Shown here piece after piece: positions 876-38,618 of a DNA stretch of 64,000 nt (position 1 is the stretch's first letter; the number at the start of each line of letters is the position of its first letter). Position numbers and translations under genes: made by a program. Source of the stretch: Azolla caroliniana. Taxonomy: Eukaryota > Plantae > Polypodiophyta. The DNA lies in contig JBHGNT010000012.1 of NCBI GenBank assembly GCA_043228905.1, forward strand, positions 8,246,001 to 8,310,000. Reading direction: 5' to 3'. The notes beneath the pieces were generated by a model. That model ran no database searches. It saw only the letters and a list, made by a program, of their open reading frames with translations, and was not told the origin of the DNA.

Positions 876-3800
876 ATGAACAAGGGAAAGAAGATTGTCG
901 GGTATGTTTTCCAAACTATATTTTTAGATTCTTCCAAGATTCCTCAAAGATCCCTTTTTGTGTTTTTTAATTTCTGCATCTAGAATTCGATGTTTTCGAT
1001 CGAGAACTCGATGCACATCGAGTTCTCGTTGAAAGTCCCCCTTTTCAACAGGAACTCCATGCATTGCATCGAGTTCTCATTGAAAGAGAACACCCCTTCA
1101 ACAGGAACTCGACGCAGTGCATCGAGTTCCCGTTGAAAGGGTGGAGAACTAGATGTTCCCTACATCGAGTTCTCGTTGAAAGGGGGGACTTTCATGATCA
1201 ATATACTAGAATTGGTCACTTTCTTGCTATTTTTGGGCATTTTTCTCAATTTTTTTTATGTAACATTACCACCCTAAACGGGTGATTTTCGCCTACTTTT
1301 GTGGAACTTTACCTTAGTTTTCAAGTTTACGTTATTTATTTTTAAGATTATCGATATATCATTGTGTTATTACTTGTTGTATTCAGTGAATCACGACAGA
1401 AGGTCCCATCCATCAAATTGAAGACTCCCTCCCCAACAAAAAAAACATCTCACACAATTCCCAAGCCTAACTCAGGGAGAGTTGATGATCACGCAAGCAA
1501 ACACACCACCAAAGTCTGCCAATAAATCAAAACCGAAACATAAAGTATAAGAAAAGGCAGCAACCTAAGGAGGATGAGCCCGAGGTACTCGAGTTCATGG
1601 AAGATAAGGAGGAAGATACCGAGCTCGAAGTTATTCCTCCAGGGTTCCACATTGCATCGGGAATGCTCACCTCAAGGCAGAATCGAATCAGAGAAAACAT
1701 TGTAAACACGAAGCTTGTCCGTAAAAGACAACTATTTCACTTGCTGGTCTCCTCTATTTAGAGGCCACCCATTGATCCCGAAACAGGAAGACGAGCTCTA
1801 GAAATAAGAGAGCCACATTCAGTGCATGTGCAAAACTTAAAAAGCAAAATGAAGATAAATCGACATGCCACTGTAGTGTCATTCTTAGTAATGGTAGACC
1901 CTGATCAATGCCCAACTGTTGCTGAGTTTAAGTACAGTTCGGCTAACGACGACACATACTACATGATTGGAGGATCCCACTTTGTTGAAGCTCGACGTCA
2001 ACTTGTGAAGGAGTATCCTCTTACCCCATTCTTCAAATATGCAGAATGTAAAGTGTACGTTGGCCTTACACATGAAGAAGCCAAGTTGCTTGCTTGGGAT
2101 CATAACAATGATAATGACTATAGACAGAAGATGTCATGTATCGAGCGCATCAGGTTCTTCCATCAAGAGTACCTTGATGCGTTGCAAAAATTTGGTCCTA
2201 GGCTGCATCTTGGATTGCGATGACAATGTCTGCTTGAAGTGGGGATAACAATTGACGAAAAGCATGAAGTCTGAAGGCCTGAGGAAATATGACTCATGGT
2301 TTCAACTTGTGTTCAGAACAGGGGAGGCGTGGGACCTCGAAGATCAATTTTTTAGCATGTGGGAGCGAAAAGAAATAAAGGGTCAAAGATCAAAGAAGGC
2401 TAAGCTCGACCCTTAAGTGGAGATAAAGTCTAAGTCACGTAAAAGTGACTTAGTAATTGAAGAATTAGCCTAGGATATGAAGCTACATCCTTGGCGGTCA
2501 TTGCAAGGAATCAAAGATGACAGATTATTAATATCTATATTATCAATAGTGGTCGCCAAGGAGTTCAGTCTTGATGAAATGGTCACAGAGTTTCAAAAGT
2601 GAGTATTCTATGTGATGACTTATTTTCATTGTATTGATTTGTTGATTTGCTCTTCATTCTAACCTTACTTTCTTTTAATTTTTAGCCATAAGGTTTATAT
2701 GAAGATACAAGCGCTGATGATGAAAAAGTTGTCCCTGCCTACGTTGGAAGAAGTGTAGCAATCGTGCCCAAAAACATCATCGTACAAGGCTCTTGAAGAA
2801 TTCTTCATCGTGTTTAGAGAATGGGTATTGTATGTTTTACAAATATTAATTGATTTTAGGATAATGGGTTTCTTCTTATAACATTTATAATTACAGAAAC
2901 CACCTTGTTCAAAGAAAATGTGTGACAGCAATGAAGGCATACCAAGTGCCTTCATCACCCATTTGGAACGAGCTAAATATGAGAAACGAATGACAAAAGG
3001 AAAGGAGCTCGAGGTGCCTGAGGACTCAAATACTGTGAAAAGCTTTTTGCACAAGGTTGATCCTTTCCGACAACTATATTATAGTTTATATAATGGTGAT
3101 GTGGCTAATATGCTTGACATATTACCCAAGCGACATTATACATTGCTCGTGGCAGATATACCGTATGGATTCCGAATAGCAGGCTCTACATACGACGATA
3201 TACCATACAAATATCCGCAAATAGAGAAGATGGTTAAAGACTTTGCAAAGCTGACCCTGGCTCCATTATGACGAATCGTTATATTTCATAGTATGGGTCA
3301 AGCTTTATCGGTCACTACTGCATTGAAGTCGAGATGCCATGCCACCGAGCACGTGCATTGGTAAGCTTTATGTTACTATATATTTAATGTATAGATTCCA
3401 TGGTGCTTACTACATATATATTAACTTGTTTCGATTGAATTATAAAATAGGGTTAAAACGAACATAACTCGTACCCCGGGTGATCGAATGGTGAGCGTTG
3501 TGGAGCATTTGTGTGTGGGCTATTACGATGCTATTTCTAAGAAGAAGGCTCGGGCACATGTTAATGAGCGGAACGTTGTCAACTATATCATGTGCCCAGC
3601 TATAATGAAGAAATTGTGCCACGTGTCTGGTGACAAGAGTCTTGTAAACCCATATCAAAAGCCCCAGCGATTGATTAATCGATTGGTCGAGTTGTTCTCA
3701 AACCTTGATGATTGGGTGCTCGACTTATTTTCTTGAACAAGTAATCTCATAAGTCTGATCAATTTTTCTTAAAATAAAATATTATTTCATGTCTTTGTTT

Positions 3801-4179
3801 TCTTACTTTTGCATGTGTGATTGTTTATTTAGGAACAACGACTTCGTGCGCTCTTAAATTGTTTAGGAACTGTGTCACATTAGAGAAGGACCCCGAGCAA
3901 GTCAATTTTATAAAGATGAGGATCCAAGGCATCTAGGATTGTCCCGACCAAGACCAAGAGGTTGGGGCAAGGCATATCAACGAAACTGAGATGTTTCAGC
4001 TGACCTCAAGAGAGCCGATGGAACCTATAGACGAGGAAGGAGGGGACCTTGTAGACCTTTAAGATGCACCAGGGTTTGATCAAATACAAGATTTAGCTCT
4101 GGAGACAAAACATGTAGATGCAACACAACTGTCAGTTGATCTTGGAGAGCAACCTGTTCCAGACCTCCTAATGGAGTGA
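876..4179 (+). pseudogene. Spliced ParB/Srx-like domain + beta-class N4C/N6A DNA methyltransferase fusion gene (decayed)
   Basis: Exons 876-901, 1387-2598, 2686-2824, 2897-3360, 3451-3740, 3833-4179 with phase-consistent GT-AG introns (exon 1 is the least certain). ParB-like part: IREPHSVHVQNLKSKM..FLVMVD..YYMIGGSHFVEARRQL..CKVYVGLTHEEAKLLAWDHN..KMSCIERI. MTase part: LYNGDVANMLDILP..YTLLVADIPYG (motif IV DPPY-like), WVKTN, EHLCVGY, NPYQKPQRLINRLVELFSNLDDWVLDLFS*T(R)TT (motifs X and I, FxGxG), RNCVTLEKDPEQVNFIKMRI. Several stops and frameshifts. Confidence 0.88.
995..1182. repeat. Array of four imperfect palindromes, consensus TTCAACGAGAACTCGATG-n-CATCGAGTTCTCGTTGAA
   Basis: Units at about 995-1035, 1043-1086, 1097-1139 and 1144-1182, inside predicted intron 1 of the methyltransferase gene. 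Confidence 0.85.
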
Positions 4180-5082: not shown

Positions 5083-5895
5083 ATGACGTCTAAATGAACT
5101 AAGGAACATAAGGATATACAAGACGAGGGTATAAGTAAGGAGGACTTTTTAGATATGTTGAATCGTTTAACAAAAATAGAGATGGATATGAAAAAATGGG
5201 TGAAAGACGCCGAAACCCACAAGAAAAAAGATAGAGAGCAAAAAGACGCCCTCAAGGCCAAAATAGAAAAACTTAAAGTGGAAAACACCAACCTTAAAAA
5301 ACAACTTAATGACATCGAGGTATCTCGAGAGGACGGTGAAATATCCTCCATAGAGGATATAAAGGACGAGATTAAAAAAGTTAAAGAGGAAGTTAAAAAT
5401 AACATAGAGTTAGCTCAAACGGGTTGGGTAGACGTGGCTAAAAGAAACATTAAAAAAGAAATAAAAGATGAAAATATTGTTAATACCACCCTTGAAGAAG
5501 AGAAAATGTGTCACGCCCGACGCTTAAATGTACGTGTCACTGGGCTCAAGGAAGGTGCATCCCCATACGAGAATGCACAAACACTTGGGAAAATGTTAGG
5601 GTACATAGAGGCCCTACCTATCACCAAAGCATGGAGGGTCGGACGTGACACAACTAGGAAGAGAGCTTTAGTCCTTCAATTTAAAGACTTAGACTCTAGA
5701 ATCACTTTCTTTAAGAAGAGACCAATTCTTCGAGGATTGGGTGGGGACCCTATCTATCTCGCTGAAGACCTCACTAAGATGCAAATTGAGCATCGCAAGA
5801 GTTGTATGCCACGAGTTATGCAAGCTCATAAAGAAGGGCATCGCGTCTTTTACCAAGACGGGCGAGTGATCATAAACGATCGCACTACTAATTGA
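5083..5895 (+). pseudogene. LINE ORF1 (coiled coil + RRM-like + C-terminal domain)
   Basis: ATG 5083 is in frame with ORF 5155-5895 through one TGA. Coiled coil, then RRLNVRVTGLKE and IYLAEDLTKMQIEHRK...GRVIIND, typical of CR1/L2/RTEX ORF1. Confidence 0.8.
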
Positions 5896-11387: not shown

Positions 11388-13269
11388 TCTTGATTTTATT
11401 TTTTCCCCTATTTCACTACATTTCTTTGGACACCCATATAACAACGGAACCTAAGCCCATGACAAATTTGACTGAACAAAAGTTCTCAAATTTATGACTT
11501 CAATGCTATGGTGTAAGGGAATGAGGAAAACAACCTCATAAATTATTAGGAAGCGTAGGCCCAACATTTAGTTGACATGTTGACATGTGGAACTTGAGCA
11601 CATGAGATTATCAACTACTCGACAATGTTTGGCCAAACCACAATATTACTAGGAGCCCAACAAGGTCAGAGCCCAATGAAATGGCAAATGAAGTAGCTCA
11701 CTTCGAGGATAACAAGGTTATTGCCTTGACGTGTGCTATATATATTTCATGCCCGAGAGCAAAAAATCTCCAAGCAAGGAGATGGAACAACCAAACGAAA
11801 TGAAGACCTCCAACACGAGCGCCTATGAGAAGGGACAAAACTAGGGTCACATGATGACCACATTCATTTCATCATCAAATTGAGACACTTGTTGAAAGGT
11901 TACTCACAAGGTCAAGCTCAATGTGCAAATGGGGCTCATAGCGGACAAAAAGTGATGGGGAGCGAAGATAACAAAAGAAGTGCTAAGATCAAAGGATATA
12001 AGAGATGCTAGAGATATGTGCATAATTTTTAAAGAGTTATTTATGCTCTTAAGAAATGTGAAGAAAACACCTTTCTAACTTTGGGAAATGTTCAAAAAAC
12101 AAAACAAATGGGTGAAACAGACTTGGTTAACTAGGTGGACTACCAAGCACAAACTCGACACTGAGTCTAGGCTTGCACATAAACATTCCCCCTTTCAAAC
12201 CTAACATATGAGCACGATTGGCTACAACTTCTACGACCAACAACTTGCATGCTTGGTAAAAAAAAAAATTAGTCCCCTTGCTACTAGCCCATCTTTTAAA
12301 GCACTTGATGAGAATCCCTGTCTCTAGCCTTCTAGGGAGATCAAAATATCATCTCTTTCATGTTTTTGAACCCCTAAAATTCTCACACCCCCCCCATTGA
12401 GTACAACATAATTGGTAATTGACATATTTGATGAATCATTACCACACAACCAACCATCACTTTTAATGAGATTACTGGAACGTAATAGTGTAAACTGCCA
12501 CGACGACAATCATTTCAATTTACAAAATCTCTTAACAAAATCATTTCAGTCTATGCTGAAATATATGTTCAAATACACCCAGCAATTGGACAATAAAAAC
12601 CTACTAATAGAATCTTGCTATTGAATCTCATTGCACTTCTGCTACACAAAAAGGTGTAGCCTAATAAATGAACTTGTGTTCTGCTAAGATAATTGTGTTC
12701 CTAAGAGGAATTAAATAGTGAAGTTGTGTGATTACATAGTTATTGACATGCATTAGATTACATTCAGATTTTACAGTAGTATAAAAATAAATCACTTCAG
12801 AAACCATTCAGTTAAAGAGTAATCAATAACAGAAACAACTGATGGATATTATATTGCATCATTTTAACATAGTTATTAGCTTTTATTCAGTAAATCATCT
12901 CTGGCTAGACTATAGCCGTTATAAAAAAACTTCCTGTATATATATTCACAATAGAAGAATGATACACAAAGATACTTTTATTTTAAATTGTTTGCTCCTA
13001 TTTATTCAATTAAGCCTCATTTGTTACACTTATAACAAAAGAAGGGGGATGTTATACAAAAGCATATACAAGCAAAATGATCATGAGTTGGGTTGATTTC
13101 TAGATTTGTACACAATACTCTGAACATATAACATACCAAAACTTGGAGCAGCCAATTTGTATCCATAAATATATGCCCAATGGGATGACGGCACACCTTG
13201 ACAATCATTAAGCTTCCATCTCAGATCTAGCATGACATGTGTGGAAACACGCATAGATAGTCCATTTCT

Positions 13270-13796: not shown

Positions 13797-14891
13797 TCAT
13801 CGTGAGTGACTATATATATCGAGAAGGGCAATTCGGCTAGCAATCAAGACCTTGAAAACTTCCCCAACACTTGCTTCCAATGGATCAATCCCATTCCTTA
13901 ACTCTCTTCTCGCCATCTTGAGCGATTCCACCGCATCTCTAATCTCTCTCGCTTGCTCTTCACCAACAGGAAAACATCTCGAATTTAGCATACTCTCCAC
14001 CTTCCCATACAACAATCTCACTGCAATATCGGTCTTATCCAACTCTTCTAGCAATGCATTTGACCCTTTAGCTTTCTTTCTATCAATCTCTTCTTTGACT
14101 CTTTGTTGGAGACTAGTTAAAGAGAAAGTCCACGCAGATTGTCCACCAACCGAAATAGAAGAAAGAGGGCGCCTCGGCTTAAAAGACAGAGCACTAGCCA
14201 AGACCCCACAAATGAAAATAGTACTTACTTGAGCAGCATAAATAACCATGAAAAAATTACCTTTAGAAGCAGCTTCCATATTTAACTTCTCACCCATTCT
14301 TCTCAGCATAGAGCTACAATTCTCAAGCTTAGATCTTCTTTGACCCATTTGATTCATCTCCTCTTCTTTCCTTTTTAAGGCCTCAATACATCTAAGAAGA
14401 GAATTTTTAGATCGTCGCAGGTGGGGTTCATAACCAACTGTTTGTGGTGAGAAGCTATGTATAGCAAGATCAACATAAGAATCGTAGGTTTTTATATCTG
14501 AGATGGCATCTCGGAGAGTTCGGCAAATGTCAAGAAGTTTAACACTGTCATCTAAGTATTCATCTAACCATTTGAAATCACCTTCTGCAAGGGCCCGTTG
14601 AAGATCAGGGATAAATACTTCTGCATATCCATGTGTGGAAAGAACCACTTCTTCCATAGCTTGGCATAGCCATGGAATACTCAAATATCCACCTTCATCG
14701 GTTGACTTCAATCTCTCCAACTGCTGACAGAGATGTGATTCGAATGACTCCAAGCCCGGATTATTACTACTCCCTCGAGAAGAAGAAGATGTATTTGCTG
14801 TTGTCGGGCTTGAAGCTTTAAAAGAGAATCGTGGCGATGAAAAGCTCTGCAGAGCGGCGCCAAGCGATGAGAAGAGGGAAGAACTAGTCAT
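13797..14891 (-). CDS. BYPASS1/ROH1-like protein (DUF793 family), single coding exon, 364 aa
   Basis: Intact ORF from ATG 14891 (MTSSSLFS...). Motifs LESFESHL..L..LK, YLSIPWL, KWLDEYLDDSVKLLDIC, W..SL..LQ.RV.EEI, LLEEL, GIDPLE..V.EVF..LI.SR..LLD. Confidence 0.85.
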   Translation of the reverse strand: MTSSSLFSSLGAALQSFSSPRFSFKASSPTTANTSSSSRGSSNNPGLESFESHLCQQLERLKSTDEGGYLSIPWLCQAMEEVVLSTHGYAEVFIPDLQRALAEGDFKWLDEYLDDSVKLLDICRTLRDAISDIKTYDSYVDLAIHSFSPQTVGYEPHLRRSKNSLLRCIEALKRKEEEMNQMGQRRSKLENCSSMLRRMGEKLNMEAASKGNFFMVIYAAQVSTIFICGVLASALSFKPRRPLSSISVGGQSAWTFSLTSLQQRVKEEIDRKKAKGSNALLEELDKTDIAVRLLYGKVESMLNSRCFPVGEEQAREIRDAVESLKMARRELRNGIDPLEASVGEVFKVLIASRIALLDIYSHSR

Positions 14892-16674
14892 GGCGATGGA
14901 TCGTAGCAGAGAAAAAGCGAGATGGGTTTCCAAAGGAAGCAGCAAAAAATCGGATGAGAAATTCAATGTCTGTCTGTCTGTCTGTCTGTGATCGATGTTC
15001 TGTGATTTAGGGCTGCTTCTGTTATTTGTGAATTTTAGGGCAGAAATTCAATGAGCAGTGCAAGTATATATACATATATGATATACATACATATACAAGC
15101 CTTCGGATTTTTATTTTTATTTTTATTTTTTTTTTATTTTTTTTTTTTTTGTTTTTTTTTTTTTTTTTTTATTTTATTTTATTTTTGTTTATTTTTTTAT
15201 TTTTTTATTTTATTTTATTTTATTTTTCCATTAATTATTTATTTCTGTTTTGCTTTTTTTTTTATTTCTTTTTCAAACCTCCTCTCAAAATCTGCTTGTA
15301 CATGCATATTGACATCAGTTTTCACGCACCAAAATCTGCCTTCCATTCCCTCTATATACATAATACTATTCTTATTTCCAATTCTTTCACACACACACAC
15401 ACGGACGGACGGACGGACGGACGGAGGTGCTCTGCCTGCCTGCCTGCCTGCTCTGATCTCGCCTCAACTCTTCACGGAACGTGTGTCTCCGTTTACCTAT
15501 TATCTGCCTCTAGCCGACCGGAACTGATAACTATTCCCATCATCCCCTCAGTGTTACTGGCAATTAACACTGCTTTTCTACCAGCTCGACTCGATTGTTC
15601 TCACCACCCCCCCCCCCCCCCTTATCTATTGGATTGTAACAGTTCGGCTCTTGCTATGTATCATCATCATGTCACCTTTGTTTGTGTTGTAGTGGCGAGC
15701 CGAGAGATCATTCCCTCCCTTTATGCAAGCAATGGTAGTCGTTCACATGTGTAGCAGGTCTCGTATGTCCCTAGTTCAACAGTTATTCCCATTTGTTGGC
15801 ATGTCCCAAGGTAGCTGGCCACATTCCCCATCCCAACGAGCATTGTCTGGTTGTACCAAATCCCCCGTTTTGTGTGTTGGCGTGGTGTCATTAGGCATAC
15901 ATATTCTCTTATATTCGTTGTCACGATGTGGCACTTGCAAAGGTGAGAAGGCACGACAAAGTTAGGTTTCACACCTGTCTTTTTAATTTTCCATTGTTCT
16001 ATTCCCCCCCTCCCCCCTCTCTCCGCAACACGCATGCACGTTCCCTAGAAAAAAAGAAAATAGATTACCCAAAATACCCCTCAAGGCTCTCCCCTTATTT
16101 CCTAAAGTACGCTTCCTTTATTAACTAAAGTTCCCCTTACTATTCTACTCCCTTTTAATTTCATAAAGCCACCTACCCTTTTAAGCATAAAGTTTCCAAT
16201 TTACTCCCCCATTCTTTGGTATACTTTAAAATATACTCATTTAAACTCTTTCTCTCTTACACACACACACTGTATACATACTCCTACACATACGCGACTA
16301 CATTTACACACATACATGCCCTATACCACTTACACATACCAACTGCACATTCATGGACAAAATCAAATACCCACACATATATATTTGAATACATACACAA
16401 ACATCAAAACCCTATACACTCTTAGGCATATATATAATCACGCACACTTACACATATTTACACATTTTCATGCAACTTTATGTTTGAATAAATTGTCGCG
16501 GCCCGATAAAGCTCTAAGGTCACAAGCCAATTCATACATGACTTATTGATCGATTCTCAAGAAGATCAATACATTGTAGTTGATTCTCAAGAAGATCGAT
16601 TTGTGACAAATCAAACTTCTTCTTCTTGTGCAAGCACCACCATGCCAGACTCCATCACTGAGCTCGACCAAATC

Positions 16675-24549: not shown

Positions 24550-27500
24550 CTCTATCGGCAACGGAATTGGGCATAAAGACAAGTCTTAGAAAGCCCTTGA
24601 TTAGAGCTTCTTAATGAGATATAACAAGTTAAATTGGTGGTTTGTATAAGAAGCAACAATAGACATAAGAAATCTTGTGTTGTCAGCATCCACATACTCA
24701 ACACACATTGCGGGTTTCCAATTGTCTTCATCATTTTCGACCTCTTCAATCGGGTGAGTTCCGTTTGTCTCTGTTGTTCAATTGAAAATTGTTTTTATCC
24801 TAGATCGAAATCACATCAAGAATAATGGATATAAACATGAATTCCTCACAAATTGTGGGGGAGATCGATATGGAAACAATTGATCCAAAAAAGAGTAATG
24901 TGATGGTTGAATGTAATTGTGAAAGGGGAGACATTGGAAGCTCTAAGAGGTTTAAGGGTATTGAGGAAATTAATGAGAAAAAATTGACATATGCTGAAGT
25001 AATACATGTAGATGAGGTTGACAAGGATCATTATAATTGGGATAATTTATGGGGAATTGCCAATACCTTGTTGTCTGATATTGTGGAAGAAAATGAAAAT
25101 GAAGCAAAAGAATGCATTGATAGAAGTTGATGCTAAGGCAGTGTTGCAATCTTTTGATGTATTCTATGATCGTGCAGTTATATTCTTTTTTACCGGGAAA
25201 CTCACATACATTAATTGGATTAAACAATAGTTGAACACAATTGTGTTCAAAATTTATATGCAGGACCATGAGGGTTTTATGATGTAGTATTTCGTTCACC
25301 GGAACATCGAAGTGCATTATTGGCTAAAGTTCCTGTGTTTTTTGATAAACAATTGGTGCATTTAATGCAATGGTCCCCGTAGTGGACTATCATGCTTTGT
25401 TAAAACAAGAATTCCCTGTTTGGGTAACAGTGGATTGTAAGCATGCTTTTTTATGGCCACTTTTACCAGAGTTGATGAGTCAAATGGGTAAAGTGTTGGT
25501 ATCTCCACATACAAATGCGACAAATAAGTCCAGATTTTGTGTGTTATGGGATACAAGTCATAAGAGGCTAGGCTGGGTGTGTATGAACACACCTGGAATG
25601 AAAAGACTTTGTTTTAAATTGAAGTGGGAGACATTTGTAGGTCATTGTTTTGGATGTGGTGAATGGGGTCACTTTATGACGGAATGCCATCGTCATTGTC
25701 CCTCAACTATATAGGTTCCTAATGAAGGGAATGGTAAGGAAGGAGTTGGGAGAGATGTTGGTGTGTCAAATATTGTGGTTGTTATGGATGAAGGAACATC
25801 ATCTAGAGCAGGTTATAAAGAGGTCTCACTTCAAGGTTTGGGCCCTAAGAATAAGGGAACTCAATCTATGGATATCGAAAAACAAAGCTTAGTGGTTATA
25901 GATAAGCTTAGGGGAAAAAACCGTTGGATAGAGCTAGTAGTGATGTTGTTGTTGACAAAGATTGGCATCAGGTTAAGGGCAAGTCGAAGGGGAAATCAAT
26001 GAATATACAACGTAATAGTTTGCCCACTACTTGGGAGACTACTTGGCAAGGTAATTCAGGAACTAGGGAGGGTCCTCGAAAAGTTCCTTGGCAACAACAA
26101 TTTAGGGATAAGGGATTACCCCTTCACCTTCAATTTGATTCATTGTGATAGGTTGTAAATTCATCAAATTCTCGAGGTTTTCGTCAAGCGGGAGGACCTA
26201 AATAAAAAAGATTTCACTAGACAACCCTAAGGATGTGGTACATGAAAATCCATATGCAGCATTGGAACATGCTTTGACTAGTTTCATGACATCGGTTGCT
26301 CTAAAGGAGCAAGTGCACCCGTAACATTGTTGATTGAATAAAAGTGGTAACATGGAATGTGAGAGGGGCATGTTCTCCTCATAAGAAGTATATATTATGG
26401 GAAACTTTGTTAAGTAAAGAATGGGATGTATTATGTGCAGTTGAGCATAAGTGTCATGAGTTAGCAGGATCCACAGTTCATTTGTGTGGATATTCATCAT
26501 TCTATGCAGGACATCTTAATAATAATTAATTTCAGGTGTGGTATTAATCGTGCGGGATAAATATTATCCTCAAGTGGTGCATAATGATCCTTATGGTTGG
26601 TTTTTGGTTCTAGAAATCACATTTTTTGGCGAGGTTGTGTGGGTGGTTGGGATTTATGCCCTTAACCAAGCCACTCAACGTATTGCATTATGGGCCTCAC
26701 TCCTTCAAACCCTATGTGTGGGCCGTCCAGGATTACTTATGGGTGATTTTAACATGTGTGTTGATGCATCTCAATCGACGTCTGAACATTCAATCATGGA
26801 TGATCCTAAGCAACTTGCTTGGGATTCATTGGCTATGGAGGTTCTGAAGTTAGATGTTTGGACATGGTTGCATGGGAATGATCTAGGTTTTACTTTCCAA
26901 TCTGCTCAACATAGACAAACATGGAGTCGGTTAGATAGAATGTATGTGATGCATGATGATTCTTTTTTACCGACATCACTTCGTATGACAGTTCAACAAG
27001 ATGTAGGAACTTCAAATCACTTTCCTATTTGTTTGGAGGTTTGTAGTCATGCAATTGACATGTTTAAATCCTTACTTGGAAAGCCTCCATTATGCTTTAA
27101 CTCTTCTCTTTTGCTTCAACCTCACTTTGATTCTCACATGGAGAAAATTTTGGTAAATTTTTCACAAGAAATGAATCTTAAAGGAGTTAAAGCATAGGAT
27201 ATCACGTTAGGAAACATTAAAATCATTCATCGTATGTATGGAGTAACTAATGCTCAATGAAGAAGAGGTCTTCTTCGACAATTCTCACAAGTTCTCTCCA
27301 GGTGTAATGCATTATTGATACATGCACCATTAGATGAGGAGCTTTTGGATGTCCAAAGTCAATTGCAGGTTATTATTTCTCAGTTGCAATGCCAAAGTTA
27401 TCGTTATGGGAAGATGCATCAACTAAAGGATGGGCTCATAGATAATCAATGTCAATCTCATTTGTTTTTCTAAGCGTTATATCCTACTTATGCTCGATCT

Positions 27501-33858: not shown

Positions 33859-35000
33859 ATGGCCATTGTTAGTGCTCAAGAATATCAATCCGTTTTCTCC
33901 GAGCTACAATGCTTGAAAGAGAAGTTCCTTGCTTTGGAAGAAGAAAATCAACGGTTGTTGGGGGATTTCAACAAATCTCCTTAGAAAAGCAGCAGACGCA
34001 ACAACATGGGGAACTAGTGGTGCGCGTGCAACAACTTGAAGCAACCTTAGTAGCGATACAACAACAAGGACCCAGTACGCAAGGGATTCATAAAGAACCC
34101 AAGTTCGGCCTTCCCATGAAATTCGATGGAATGTGATTGTAGTTTAGAGGATTCCTTAATCAAGTACGATTAGTCATTCAAATGCATCCTTCTTGATATC
34201 CCACCGATGCATCACGAGTGGGATTAGTAGGCACTCTACTTAGTGGCACGACTTTGGCATGGTTCGCCCCCTTGTTAGAAAAAAGCTCTCCCTTGTTAAA
34301 TAATTTCAAAGAGTTTATTACTGAGTTTAAAGCCTGTTTTGGAGATATCGACAGTGTTAGAACAACAATCAACAAAATCCGAAGATTGCGCCAAGGTGAG
34401 CGGCTGACCTCGGTTTATGTTGCGGATTTTCGTCTTCTCGCCACTGATATTCCCTGGAATGACCAGGCACTAATGGAGCAATTTCGTTTTGGCCTACGTA
34501 ATGATGTTAAAGATTTACTCTTAACTTTCCCCGAGGAGCCAAAGTCATTGATAGAAGCAATCAGTCGCGCGGTGCGATGCGATAATCGCCTCTTCGAACG
34601 ACATTTGGAAAGTCAGTTCCAAATGCCACGGACAAGATCGGAGCCCACCTACGCTTCAATCGTAGCAAAGCCTTTCCCAAGGGAGTCATTCAATACGCCT
34701 TCAACAAATACTCCGACTCCAATGGAAATTGACACCACACGTCGCCGTGGACCACTATTAGAAGAAGAAAAGCAGCGACACAAGGCAAATCGATTATGTC
34801 TTTATTGCGGTGGACCGAGGCATATTGCAGTGAACTACCCCCATCAACAAAAAAGGTAGGTAAATCAAATATTAACCGCTAGTACTAATAGTACTAAATC
34901 TGAGTCTATTCCTCTAGGTGTGTCTCATAGTCCTAATAGCCCAAACCTTTCAAACAAATTTGAAATCCTTAGTCAACTAGAAGAAGAGTTAAACGATTAA
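33859..35000 (+). pseudogene. Gypsy gag
   Basis: EPKFGLPMKFDG, LAWFAPLLE, LRQG..SVYVADFRLLA..WNDQAL..FRFGLRNDVKD, PMEID, LCLYCGGPRH. Confidence 0.9.
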
Positions 35001-35019
35001 GTCCAGCCAAAATAGGAGC

Positions 35020-38000
35020 CGTTTGGTTGGACAGCCCTAGATCTCTACAGCCCATTGGTGGTTCCATTTCCTCTAAGCAAGTTAGCAATGTGTTATTAGA
35101 TCAAGTAATGGTTAGTACTAAAAGTACTCCTCCAGTATATGTCTTAGCACTCTTAGATTCCGGATCCAACTCTTAGATAGGAATTTTGCCCAAGCTCATC
35201 AGATATCCCTAAAGAAACTCCCATGTCTAGCCTCTATAGTAGTCATTGATGGTCGTCCCATTGCTTTCGGGAATATTATAAAAGAGTCAAAACCCGTTAA
35301 TATTGTCCTAGATAACTTAGCGTGTGTAGTATCATTTAATATAATTAGTATCCCATAACATCCCATTGTTTTGGGATTACAATGGTTTGAATTACATAAC
35401 CCAGCCATAGATTGGAGAACAAGAGAAATACAATGTCAACAAACCCAAGGATCTACTCATAAGATTGCAACCATTTCGCTACATTACTTGCGTGCTTCCA
35501 TCAGTTGCGTGAGGAAGCATGGAAGGAAGAAATGTTTTTCTTCGCAATATTAGTAAACCCCTCCAGTATCAATAAAGAGGAGTCCACCGTTCAACTTCTA
35601 GAGAAGTATCGTCATTATGCCGATGTGTTCGATAAAGTACGAGCTAATACGCTTCCTCACCATCGACGGTATGATTGCCCCATTGATTTATAACCGGGAA
35701 AAGAACCACCATGGGGACCGATCTACAATTTGTCACCAATCGAGCTAGAAGTCCTTTGAGCCTATATAGAGGAGGATTTGGCAAATGGTTTCATTCGACA
35801 TTCGAAATATCCAACCGGCGCACCCATTTTCTTCGTCAAGAAAAAGGATGGATCACTTCGTCTCGTTGTAGATTACCGTGGGTTGAATAAAGTCACCATC
35901 AGGAATATGTATGCACTTCCCCTTATCTCAAGTCTTTTAGAATGGATCAATGGTGCACGGTACTTCACAAAGATCGACTTACGAGGAGCGTATAACCTCG
36001 TACGGATCCGACCAGGAGATGAATGGAAGACTGCGTTTCACACCAGATATGGGCACTTCGAGTATACGGTCATGCCATTCAGCCTCACTAATGCGCCAAC
36101 AGTCTTCCAACACATGGCAAATGATATATTCCAAGATCTCTTGGATGATTTTTTGATCATCTATTTGGATGATTTGCTGGTTTATTCGAAGACCTAAGAA
36201 GAGCATGATTCTCATGTATTGTTAATACTAAAACAACTTCGAGAACATGGTCTTTATGCAAAACTGGAAAAATGTAGTTTCGGGTGCAACCAGATAGAAT
36301 TTTTGGGCTATGTCATTTCCTCGGAAGGCATCTCCATGGATCCAGCTAAGGTCAAAACGGTGGTAGAGTGGCATACTCCACGTTCATTGCGAGATGTGCA
36401 ATGTTTTTTAGGCTTTGCCAATTTTTACCGCAAGTTCATACAGGATTACTCAAAGCTTGTTCTGCCTCTCACACAACTTACCAGGAAGGGAAAATCGTTC
36501 GTTTGGTCTGAAGAAGCGGACATTGCTTTTGAGAGTCTTAAGAAGGCATTTACATCAGCTCCTATTTTAGCTTATGTTGATCCAGAGAAGCCATTCATCA
36601 TTGAAGCAGACATGTCGGATTTCGCCTTGGGTAGCATTCTGTCTCAACAAGGCGATGATGAGAAGCTACATCTTGTGGCTTTCCATTCACGCAAGTGCCG
36701 TGGAAATCAACTATGAAATTAATGATAAGGAGCTATTAGCAATAGTGGACTCTTTTACGCAATTGAGGCATTTTCTAGAGGGGTCTTCTCATGAAGTCAT
36801 CGTATTCAGTGATCACAAAAACCTTGCCTACTTTCAGAATGCTCGTGTGTTAAATCGACGTCAAGCTTGGTGGGCCCAATTCCTCACTCATTTTGACTTT
36901 AAAATTACATATCATCTGGGGAAGCGACAAGGGAAGGAAAATGCATTATCACGAGATTCGTATCTAGCATCGCGTACCGGCGAGCCGGCTTTCGATAACC
37001 AAAAGCAAGTAATCTTGGGACCGACACGACTGCAAGCAACACAGGTCTTCAATATGCCCTTGAATTCCGACATTATCGATACCATACGTGAGGACTTGAA
37101 GACAGATGTTTTTGCTCAAGCCATTCTAGCACAAATTGATCCCTCTCGAGCATCTTGTTCACAGTCGCAACAACAACCAAGTACGGACTATCAACAATTC
37201 GAATGTCATGACGGATTACTATTCTTTAAGAAACTCTTGTATGTTCCTAATGGTACTTGTCGCCTTCAAGTAGTCCAATACATCTGGGCATTTGGGTAGT
37301 ACTAAAACACTAGATTTAGTACAACGATCCTTCTGGTGGTCCCATATGTGACAATTTGTCGAAGATTTTGTTTGGACTTGTGATACATGTTGCAGAGCAA
37401 AAATGTCAAGGCATTATCCATATGGTTTATTAGAACCATTACCAATTCCAAGCAAGCCATGGCAATCCATTGCCCTAGATTTCATCACAGATCTTCCGGT
37501 CTCTAAGGGATTCGATGCCATCTTAACAGTAGTAGATTGATATACGAAGATGGCCCATTTCCTACCATGTACTAAGGAAATCTCCAGTGAAGAAACTGCC
37601 GAAATTGTCATGCGTGAAGTATGTCGGCATCATGGCCTTCCCCATAGTATCATCAGCGACCGTGGACCCTAGTTCGTCTCGAAGTTCTGGAAGCACCTCT
37701 TTAAAATGCTTAAGGTCACTTGTAACCTCTCCTCCATCTACCACCCACAAACAGACGGCCAAGTAGAACGAACAAATCAAATGCTGGAGCAGTATCTTCG
37801 GTGCTTTTTAAGCTATCATCAAGATGACTGGGCGAATATTCTCCACTTCGCCAAATTTGCGTATAATAACTATGTCCACTCATCGACAAAGGTGACACCA
37901 TTTTATGCTTACACAGGTTGTCACCTTCGGTGGTGTGTATTTGAAACCCTAGAGTTACCTACAAAATCCTTGTGTAGAGGATCGTTTGGAGCGGCTACGT

Positions 38001-38618
38001 AAGATACAAGCGGATTTATCTACTCATCTACAACAAGCTCAACAAACACACAAGGTTTCTGCGGATCATCATCGGCCTCCATCCAGTTTTGACATTAGAG
38101 ATTGGGTGTGGCTACTACGACGACACATCAAGACTACTCGCCCATGCGAGAAGTTGGATTACCTGCGATTAGGTCGTTTTCGTATTATCAGAAAAATTAA
38201 TGATGTCGCTTTTCGTCTCGATCTACCTCCACAACTTCGGATACATCCGGTGTTTCATAGTTCTCTCCTCGAACCCTATCAAGACATCACCCTCCCAAGC
38301 CGTATTAAACAACCTCCACCCCCGATCGAGCTTGAAGATGGACCTGAGTACGAGGTTGCCGCCATCCTCGATTCCAAGATTGTTCGTAACAAGCTCTACT
38401 ATTTAGTCGATTGGCTAGGATATAGTCCCATGGAGCATACTTGGGAACCAATAGAGAATGTGACCAATGCTCATGCTCTTCTTGAAGACTTCCATTGTCA
38501 ATATCCAGACAAACTAGGTCCTCAATCCAAAACGACTCGTGACACTCGTAAATATCCAGACAAACTGGGTCCTCAATCCAAAACGACTCGTTGTTTTAAA
38601 GGGGGGATAGTGTCATGA
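35020..38618 (+). pseudogene. Gypsy pol (protease, RT, RNase H, integrase, chromodomain)
   Basis: ALLDSGS; [26 protein letters not shown]; EADMSDFALG, DKELLAI, SDHKNL; SDRGP, HPQTDGQVER; EYEVAAILDSK..YYLVDWLGY..TWEP. Frameshifts and stops; 51-bp tandem duplication at the 3' end. Confidence 0.95.

Follow-up and report, generated by a model that had tools for sequence, protein, structure and literature searches.

The catalytic half of a decayed, probably transposon-borne gene in Azolla caroliniana belongs to a land-plant family of beta-class DNA amino-methyltransferases

The system closest to the gene described here is known from algae. In the Sola1-1_Ec32 transposon of Ectocarpus, an accessory gene lying opposite the transposase encodes a protein with a ParB-like domain and an N4/N6 methyltransferase domain; similar proteins are cited for transposons of green and red algae, and self-marking has been proposed as the role of the algal protein (PMC12477816, Genome Biol 2025). 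In Marchantia, the catalytic motif of the methyltransferase MpDN4MT1 reads TSPPY (bioRxiv 10.1101/2021.02.12.428880). Here we report on a stretch of 64,000 nucleotides (nt) from the fern Azolla caroliniana (GCA_043228905.1, contig JBHGNT010000012.1, positions 8,246,001 to 8,310,000), referred to below as the window; all exon and intron coordinates are those of its forward strand, position 1 being its first letter. In our judgement the window very probably holds the catalytic half of a decayed gene in which a ParB-like N-terminal domain was fused to a bacterial/phage-type beta-class methyltransferase, most likely an accessory gene of the Sola1 type, whose N-terminal part would target DNA and whose C-terminal part would methylate amino groups in copies that are still active.

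Translation places a beta-class N6_N4 DNA amino-methyltransferase domain at 2897-3935 on the plus strand, in three coding pieces. The first exon of the domain (2897-3360, +) encodes LYNGD and LLVADIPYGF, with the DIPY of catalytic motif IV at 3155-3166. It is followed by intron 1 (3361-3450, +), a GT-AG intron of 90 nt in phase 2 (TG/GTAAGC...ATAG/G, slashes marking the splice sites) that divides the Trp codon before VKTN. The next exon (3451-3740, +) supplies (W)VKTN, VEH, NPYQKP (3647-3664) and WVLDLFS, of which LDLFS occupies 3719-3733. Intron 2 (3741-3832, +; 92 nt, GT-AG, phase 1, A/GTAATC...TTAG/G) falls within motif I, the FxGxG that binds S-adenosylmethionine (SAM), and the last exon (3833-4179, +) carries the remainder of that motif, TTTSCALK, RNCVTLEKD, IKMRI and an acidic tail up to a terminal TGA at 4177-4179. 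Both introns preserve the reading frame. The domain is circularly permuted, DIPY lying N-terminal to the FxGxG remnant at 3728-3840. A preliminary description made from the letters of the window had recognised this beta-class order and placed every motif correctly on the plus strand, as translation confirmed, and its two introns of 90 and 92 nt, in frame and one of them inside FxGxG, likewise held up, with splice sites that are conserved in other copies. Among the relatives introduced below, motif IV reads DIPY in the window, in Riccia and in the copy L005, DAPY in Adiantum, DFPY in Chara and DIPH in Ginkgo; the motif retains its Asp, its second Pro and its aromatic residue.

The identity of the family is carried by profile, sequence and fold searches, in which the window exons were queried singly. 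The 94-residue exon at 3452-3733 alone matched Pfam PF01555 (N6_N4_Mtase) with E 4.7e-5 and 23.9 bits, just below the curated cut-off of 26.7 bits. All of its longer relatives exceed that cut-off (47.6-68.9 bits); for the window exons taken singly, the match to PF01555, which the preliminary description had proposed as a check, reaches 23.9 bits at most. Queried by phmmer against 1.84 billion representatives, the 94-residue exon found 62 proteins at E<=1e-3, 20 of them at E<=1e-10; the named relatives come from Chara braunii, Riccia, Adiantum, Ceratopteris and Ginkgo. In an Adiantum protein the PF01555 match spans profile positions 6-218 of 221, the region of motif IV included. The Ginkgo relative Gb_37443 (P0025) matches phrog_67, 'DNA methyltransferase', over the entire domain (residues 337-582, E 1.5e-27), and by tblastn it matches 781 phage records at 23-28% identity.

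Fold comparisons were made for the Ginkgo relative only, using a structure model of P0025 with a mean predicted local distance difference test (pLDDT) score of 51 overall and about 80-90 in the methyltransferase core. With this model, each of the 42 Foldseek matches at E<=1e-3 is a DNA amino-methyltransferase, either beta-class or type III Mod, with E down to 2.8e-8. An all-against-all structural alignment gave Z 15.1-12.2 over 182-201 aligned residues for M.BceJIV, MboIIA, CcrM, M1.HpyAVI, TTHA0409, rotifer N4CMT, RsrI and PvuII. Enzymes of the MT-A70 kind, from which the preliminary description had set the domain apart, reached Z 8.5 at most, against 12-15 for the beta-class enzymes. The methyltransferase signal is far beyond chance and, judged by its sequence, the region 2897-3935 is a beta-class N6_N4 DNA amino-methyltransferase domain by descent, in a copy that is not a working member of the family.

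The exon-intron model was examined by aligning the window with L001, L002, L005 and L006, four diverged copies that come from environmental assemblies and show 67-73% DNA identity. The donor of intron 1 (TGG/GTAAG) and its acceptor (AG/G) are invariant in 5/5 copies, and the GT donor of intron 2 is retained in all five. Exons are 69-77% identical to those of L001, L002 and L006 and 58-60% identical to those of L005 (for exon 2897-3360, 72-77% and 59%, respectively), against 35-49% among the copies for the introns, which are essentially unalignable; the interior of intron 1 comes to 43-49%. Exon differences at the first, second and third codon positions number 24/8/74 (exon 2897-3360) and 18/5/50 in comparison with L001, and 29/14/80 and 17/3/50 in comparison with L006. 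From this excess at third positions, together with the conserved splice sites, it follows that the exon-intron model is right and that purifying selection acted on the coding sequence during the divergence of the copies. Independent open reading frame (ORF) fragments of the family bear this out: they enter from unrelated sequence at (R/W)VKTN or leave LDLFSGT into unrelated sequence; in P0005, P0006 and P0009, LDLFSGT or LDLFAGTG gives way to unrelated sequence at the site of intron 2. Adiantum and the liverwort Riccia likewise have an interruption at the position of intron 1; at that of intron 2, Adiantum has one and Riccia has none. By these comparisons of sequence, the spliceosomal introns are real and conserved in position.

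The copy in the window is a pseudogene. In-frame stops stand at 1523, in the large exon of the longer gene described below, and at 1759, 2221, 2414, 2471, 2756, 3269, 3734, 3934 and 4060, about ten in total, and a frameshift lies near 2260-2266, where the frame of the Ginkgo tblastn match changes (2262/2267); a second frame change is probably present near 1525. The stop in the linker exon is a TAG (2756-2758). Between motif IV and intron 1, a TGA (3269-3271) replaces a conserved Trp that is encoded by TGG in 4/4 related copies. A further TGA (3734-3736) stands at the first Gly of FxGxG, for which relatives have GGC/GGA or AGC, and the second Gly has become Arg, through an AGA codon assembled across the splice. 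The window copy is consequently left with no intact motif I, which reads FSGTG, FSGSG or FAGTG in relatives; the preliminary description had placed its FS[G]T[G]TT correctly, and the two glycines that it had supplied in brackets are this stop and this Arg. The in-frame TAG at 3934-3936, which is TGG in L005 and L002, closes the region 2897-3935, and the last exon also holds the in-frame TAA at 4060. With about ten stops and at least one frameshift the locus therefore cannot make an enzyme, and on this reading of its codons it is dead.

The methyltransferase domain is the 3′ half of one longer gene, which extends over about 876-4179 on the plus strand. By tblastn, the Ginkgo proteins P0025/P0063 are collinear with window positions 1528-4065, the Ginkgo protein having 670 residues. 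A putative first coding exon (876-901, +), with an ATG at 876 and a GT donor at 902, is predicted from the sequence without homologue support. A large exon (1387-2598, +) encodes an N-terminal region and the ParB-like domain (about 1822-2220), and is collinear with P0025/P0063 over 1528-2599. The conserved N-terminal domain itself (IGGxH..EARR..GLT..WDHN.DN), at 1822-2220, is likewise collinear with the Ginkgo proteins. A small linker exon (2686-2824, +) was placed by translation; to the eye it is similar to the linker of Riccia P0040, and the blastn match to L005 covers it. In the last exon, the P0025 match covers 3832-4065. No second copy of the gene was found within the window.

The surroundings of the relatives link the family to a transposase. 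In Riccia sorocarpa (L004), the homologue stands head-to-head with a gene whose 425-residue ORF matches Pfam DUF7869 (E 7.2e-55) and shows DDE-like motifs, and a second such gene lies downstream of the methyltransferase gene. In Adiantum nelumboides (L003), a homologue of the Riccia transposase, 59-71% identical over the first 168 residues, stands upstream of the methyltransferase gene and is encoded on the other strand. From this layout we infer that the gene in the window was an accessory of a Sola1-type cut-and-paste transposon, whose transposase would have stood just upstream of the window.

Arrays of palindromes accompany the gene. The window has four, at 995-1182, within the putative first intron, with the core GAACTCGATG..CATCGAGTTC (TCGATG..CATCGA). 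L005 has five or more (741-1022), with the core GAAGTCGATGC..GCATCGACTTC, in which a C/G change is compensated on both arms, and the array is the sole non-coding sequence that can be aligned between the window and L005. The Riccia element (L004 9569-9734) has two palindromes of 42 bp and of different sequence, between the transposase and methyltransferase genes. These arrays are candidate parS-like protein-binding sites, possibly bound by the N-terminal domain.

Some peculiarities of the annotated relatives were seen along the way. The annotated 720-residue gene model of Adiantum nelumboides (GCA_022343405.2; L003 10001-81113) spans 71 kb and attaches unrelated upstream exons to the methyltransferase gene (78734-81110); the model is probably a chimera, produced by annotating across transposon copies. 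In Riccia, the last methyltransferase exon (L004 12854-12946) contains an in-frame stop (YIQ-stop-RIRS), and the annotated protein P0040 lacks the exon of motif IV, an exon that the DNA itself contains at about 12114-12392.

Several observations weigh against a fused, transposon-borne methyltransferase gene as described above. No homologue of the DUF7869 transposase occurs within the 64-kb window, which begins just 875 nt upstream of the ATG at 876, and neither a terminal inverted repeat nor a target-site duplication was seen in it; the left end of the element would lie before position 1, and its 3′ end escaped placement, since past the stop codon the window and L005 share no similarity. For the methyltransferase, the first Pro of the canonical (D/N/S)-P-P-(Y/F/W) motif is replaced family-wide, in all members seen. 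For the N-terminal domain, the ParB-like call draws on sub-threshold matches to Pfam DUF6551 (E 0.0026-0.045 in four members, 0.0045 for the large exon of the window), on language-model look-alikes and on the literature. The nearest of these look-alikes are clusters of phage ParB_N + PF01555 fusions at 0.88-0.89, below the trust level of 0.9, and serve as a lead only. A profile of the domain found nothing significant among PDB sequences (sulfiredoxin came out at E 2), its AlphaFold model was unusable at pLDDT 37, tblastn gave no match in phages and PHROGs none either, and a fold search with the whole protein was taken up by the methyltransferase domain. 'ParB-like' is thus used here as a weakly supported label taken from the literature, and is not a result.

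The nature of the gene could be read in other ways, and the most substantial of these is that an old horizontal acquisition was domesticated as a host gene and served the plant, much as the sperm-specific 4mC (N4-methylcytosine) writers MpDN4MT1a/b do in Marchantia. Eukaryotic introns and purifying selection among the copies would fit such a gene, as would the age of the family in streptophytes and the presence of annotated gene models in Ginkgo, Adiantum, Riccia and Chara. The stops and the frameshift of the window copy speak against it, however, as do the scattering of the family over numerous diverged fragments (20 clusters at E<=1e-10), the two DUF7869 transposase genes that flank the Riccia homologue, and a motif IV of the form D-x-P-Y where MpDN4MT1 has TSPPY (bioRxiv 10.1101/2021.02.12.428880). 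A working host gene was rejected on the stops, the frameshift, the fragment copies and the transposase linkage, and we regard domestication as improbable. The preliminary description had held that the acquired domain turned into a eukaryotic gene; if a host gene is meant by this, the view is not supported, the domain being part of a larger gene that is linked to a transposase in Riccia and Adiantum and, in this copy, interrupted by stops and a frameshift. Contamination by bacterial or phage DNA, or a recent insertion of bacterial DNA, would account for the bacterial and phage origin of the closest profiles and structures, but the GT-AG introns at conserved sites argue against it, and identity to phage enzymes is just 23-28%. 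The surroundings are also those of a plant: GC content is 38% in the gene as in its flanks and throughout the window, and the same 64 kb hold a fern host gene, a chromovirus-type retroelement and fragments of long interspersed nuclear elements (LINEs). The host gene is an intronless ORF of 389 residues (13800-14966, minus strand) of the BPS1/ROH1-like kind (PF05633, E 4.9e-31), its best named relatives being fern proteins (Adiantum 71%, Ceratopteris 69%). Pieces of a Ty3/chromovirus-type long terminal repeat (LTR) retroelement (34218-38618, +) include gag, ribonuclease H (RNase H), an integrase SH3 domain and a chromodomain. Two ORFs are probably LINE remnants near the methyltransferase gene, one of 246 residues (5155-5895, +), LINE ORF1-like by eye and without a Pfam match, and an endonuclease/exonuclease/phosphatase fragment (26538-27197, +; PF03372, E 3.1e-5). 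No match to Rfam was found in the window. Contamination is excluded by the conserved introns and the plant context, its likelihood being negligible, and the preliminary description, which had rejected it, is borne out by the conserved introns and by the fern gene and plant retroelements on the same contig. It is plausible on these sequences that the domain was transferred long ago from bacteria or phages; the family is distributed from Chara to Ginkgo, and intron 1 is common to the liverwort and the ferns.

A further question is what the enzyme would have modified. That the family acts on RNA or protein, in the manner of Trm11, RlmKL/UPF0020 or HemK-like enzymes, is suggested by weak secondary matches of some relatives to UPF0020, TRM5 and Cons_hypoth95 (E 1e-4 to 1e-2). 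PF01555 is nevertheless the best family throughout, by many orders of magnitude, and each top structural match is a DNA methyltransferase, whereas the RNA enzymes METTL3/14 stay at Z <=8.5. The preliminary description had named a grouping with RNA methyltransferases such as Trm11 as a possible refutation; we hold an RNA or protein substrate to be very improbable. As to the base, N4-methylcytosine rather than N6-methyladenine (6mA) would be compatible with PF01555, which includes both kinds of enzyme, and with the fold of the Ginkgo homologue, for which rotifer N4CMT (Z 12.7) and M.PvuII (Z 12.2) lie within 3 units of the best N6-adenine enzymes; fold scores do not separate the two kinds. N4-cytosine enzymes typically have Ser at the start of motif IV, a trait reportedly pointed out by Bujnicki and Radlinska in 1999. 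The motif opens instead with Asp in every member seen (DIPY, DAPY, DFPY, DIPH), and the ADIPY of the window is not the TSPPY of 4mC writers of the MpDN4MT1 type. In sequence matches, the N6-adenine enzymes RsrI, CcrM and MboIIA reach E ~1e-6 against E 0.2-0.5 for N4CMT and PvuII, and the best NCBIfam model is CcrM. From these sequence comparisons 6mA appears the somewhat likelier product of the family, with 4mC a possible but less likely one. The preliminary description had cautioned that DIPY does not decide between the two; this holds, and D-x-P-Y, like the nearest solved relatives, leans towards 6mA.

If the gene is an accessory of a Sola1-type transposon, its mode of action in active copies can be sketched. 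The N-terminal domain would bring the enzyme to DNA, perhaps to the element's own 5′ palindrome array, and the C-terminal domain would then use SAM to methylate the exocyclic amino group of a base, adenine more likely than cytosine, and so mark the DNA of the element. It is tempting, although at present doubtful, to go further and regard active members as self-marking land-plant transposons, in which the ParB-like domain would sit on the element's own palindromes as ParB does on parS, and the fused enzyme would deposit 6mA (or 4mC) on the element and in its vicinity and thereby alter its silencing or transposition. Were this so, ferns and Ginkgo would have an enzyme dedicated to writing an amino-methyl mark in DNA. 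Enzymatic 6mA and 4mC in the DNA of land plants, and the identity of any writer, are disputed. A concrete candidate for such a writer is a selected, intron-bearing amino-methyltransferase of bacterial type that has multiple copies in ferns and also occurs in Ginkgo, liverworts and Chara. The locus in the window is itself a fossil, and its value is that of a witness to the family and to the positions of its introns.

Set beside enzymes already described, the family resembles the bacterial and phage N6-adenine methyltransferases (M.RsrI, CcrM, M.MboIIA and M.BceJIV) in motif order, in fold (Z 12.5-15.1) and, with E ~1e-6, in the region of NPxQKP and FxGxG, whilst the phage ParB_N-N6_N4_Mtase fusions are its nearest look-alikes by features and serve as a lead only. 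Identity to these bacterial and phage proteins is nevertheless 15-28%, and D-x-P-Y takes the place of DPPY. The fern and land-plant family also differs from them in its spliceosomal introns, long linker, acidic C-terminal tail and probable setting in a eukaryotic transposon. N4CMT of bdelloid rotifers (PDB 8s9m/8s9n) is a beta-class enzyme that a eukaryote gained by horizontal transfer, and its fold is similar (Z 12.7), but sequence similarity is marginal (E 0.2), and this enzyme, encoded by a host gene, has been proven to write 4mC. MpDN4MT1a/b of Marchantia are, like the family, beta-class amino-methyltransferases of prokaryotic origin in a land plant, but as host genes they have the TSPPY motif and are expressed specifically in sperm (bioRxiv 10.1101/2021.02.12.428880), whereas the family described here has D-x-P-Y and is linked to a transposon. 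The likeness to Sola1-1_Ec32 is one of domain order and gene layout. The algal protein has 1104 residues and resides in a 21.5-kb element, compared with about 590-790 residues for the land-plant proteins. In the literature searched we found neither the presence of the family in ferns, liverworts or Ginkgo nor its conserved introns or its palindrome arrays. In both cases a two-domain protein, with a domain called ParB-like followed by one of the PF01555 type, is encoded antisense to a transposase, in the land plants as seen in Riccia and Adiantum. The ParB-like/methyltransferase accessory gene known from algal transposons would thus find its extension in this family, and the Sola1 kind of accessory gene would reach deep into the land plants.

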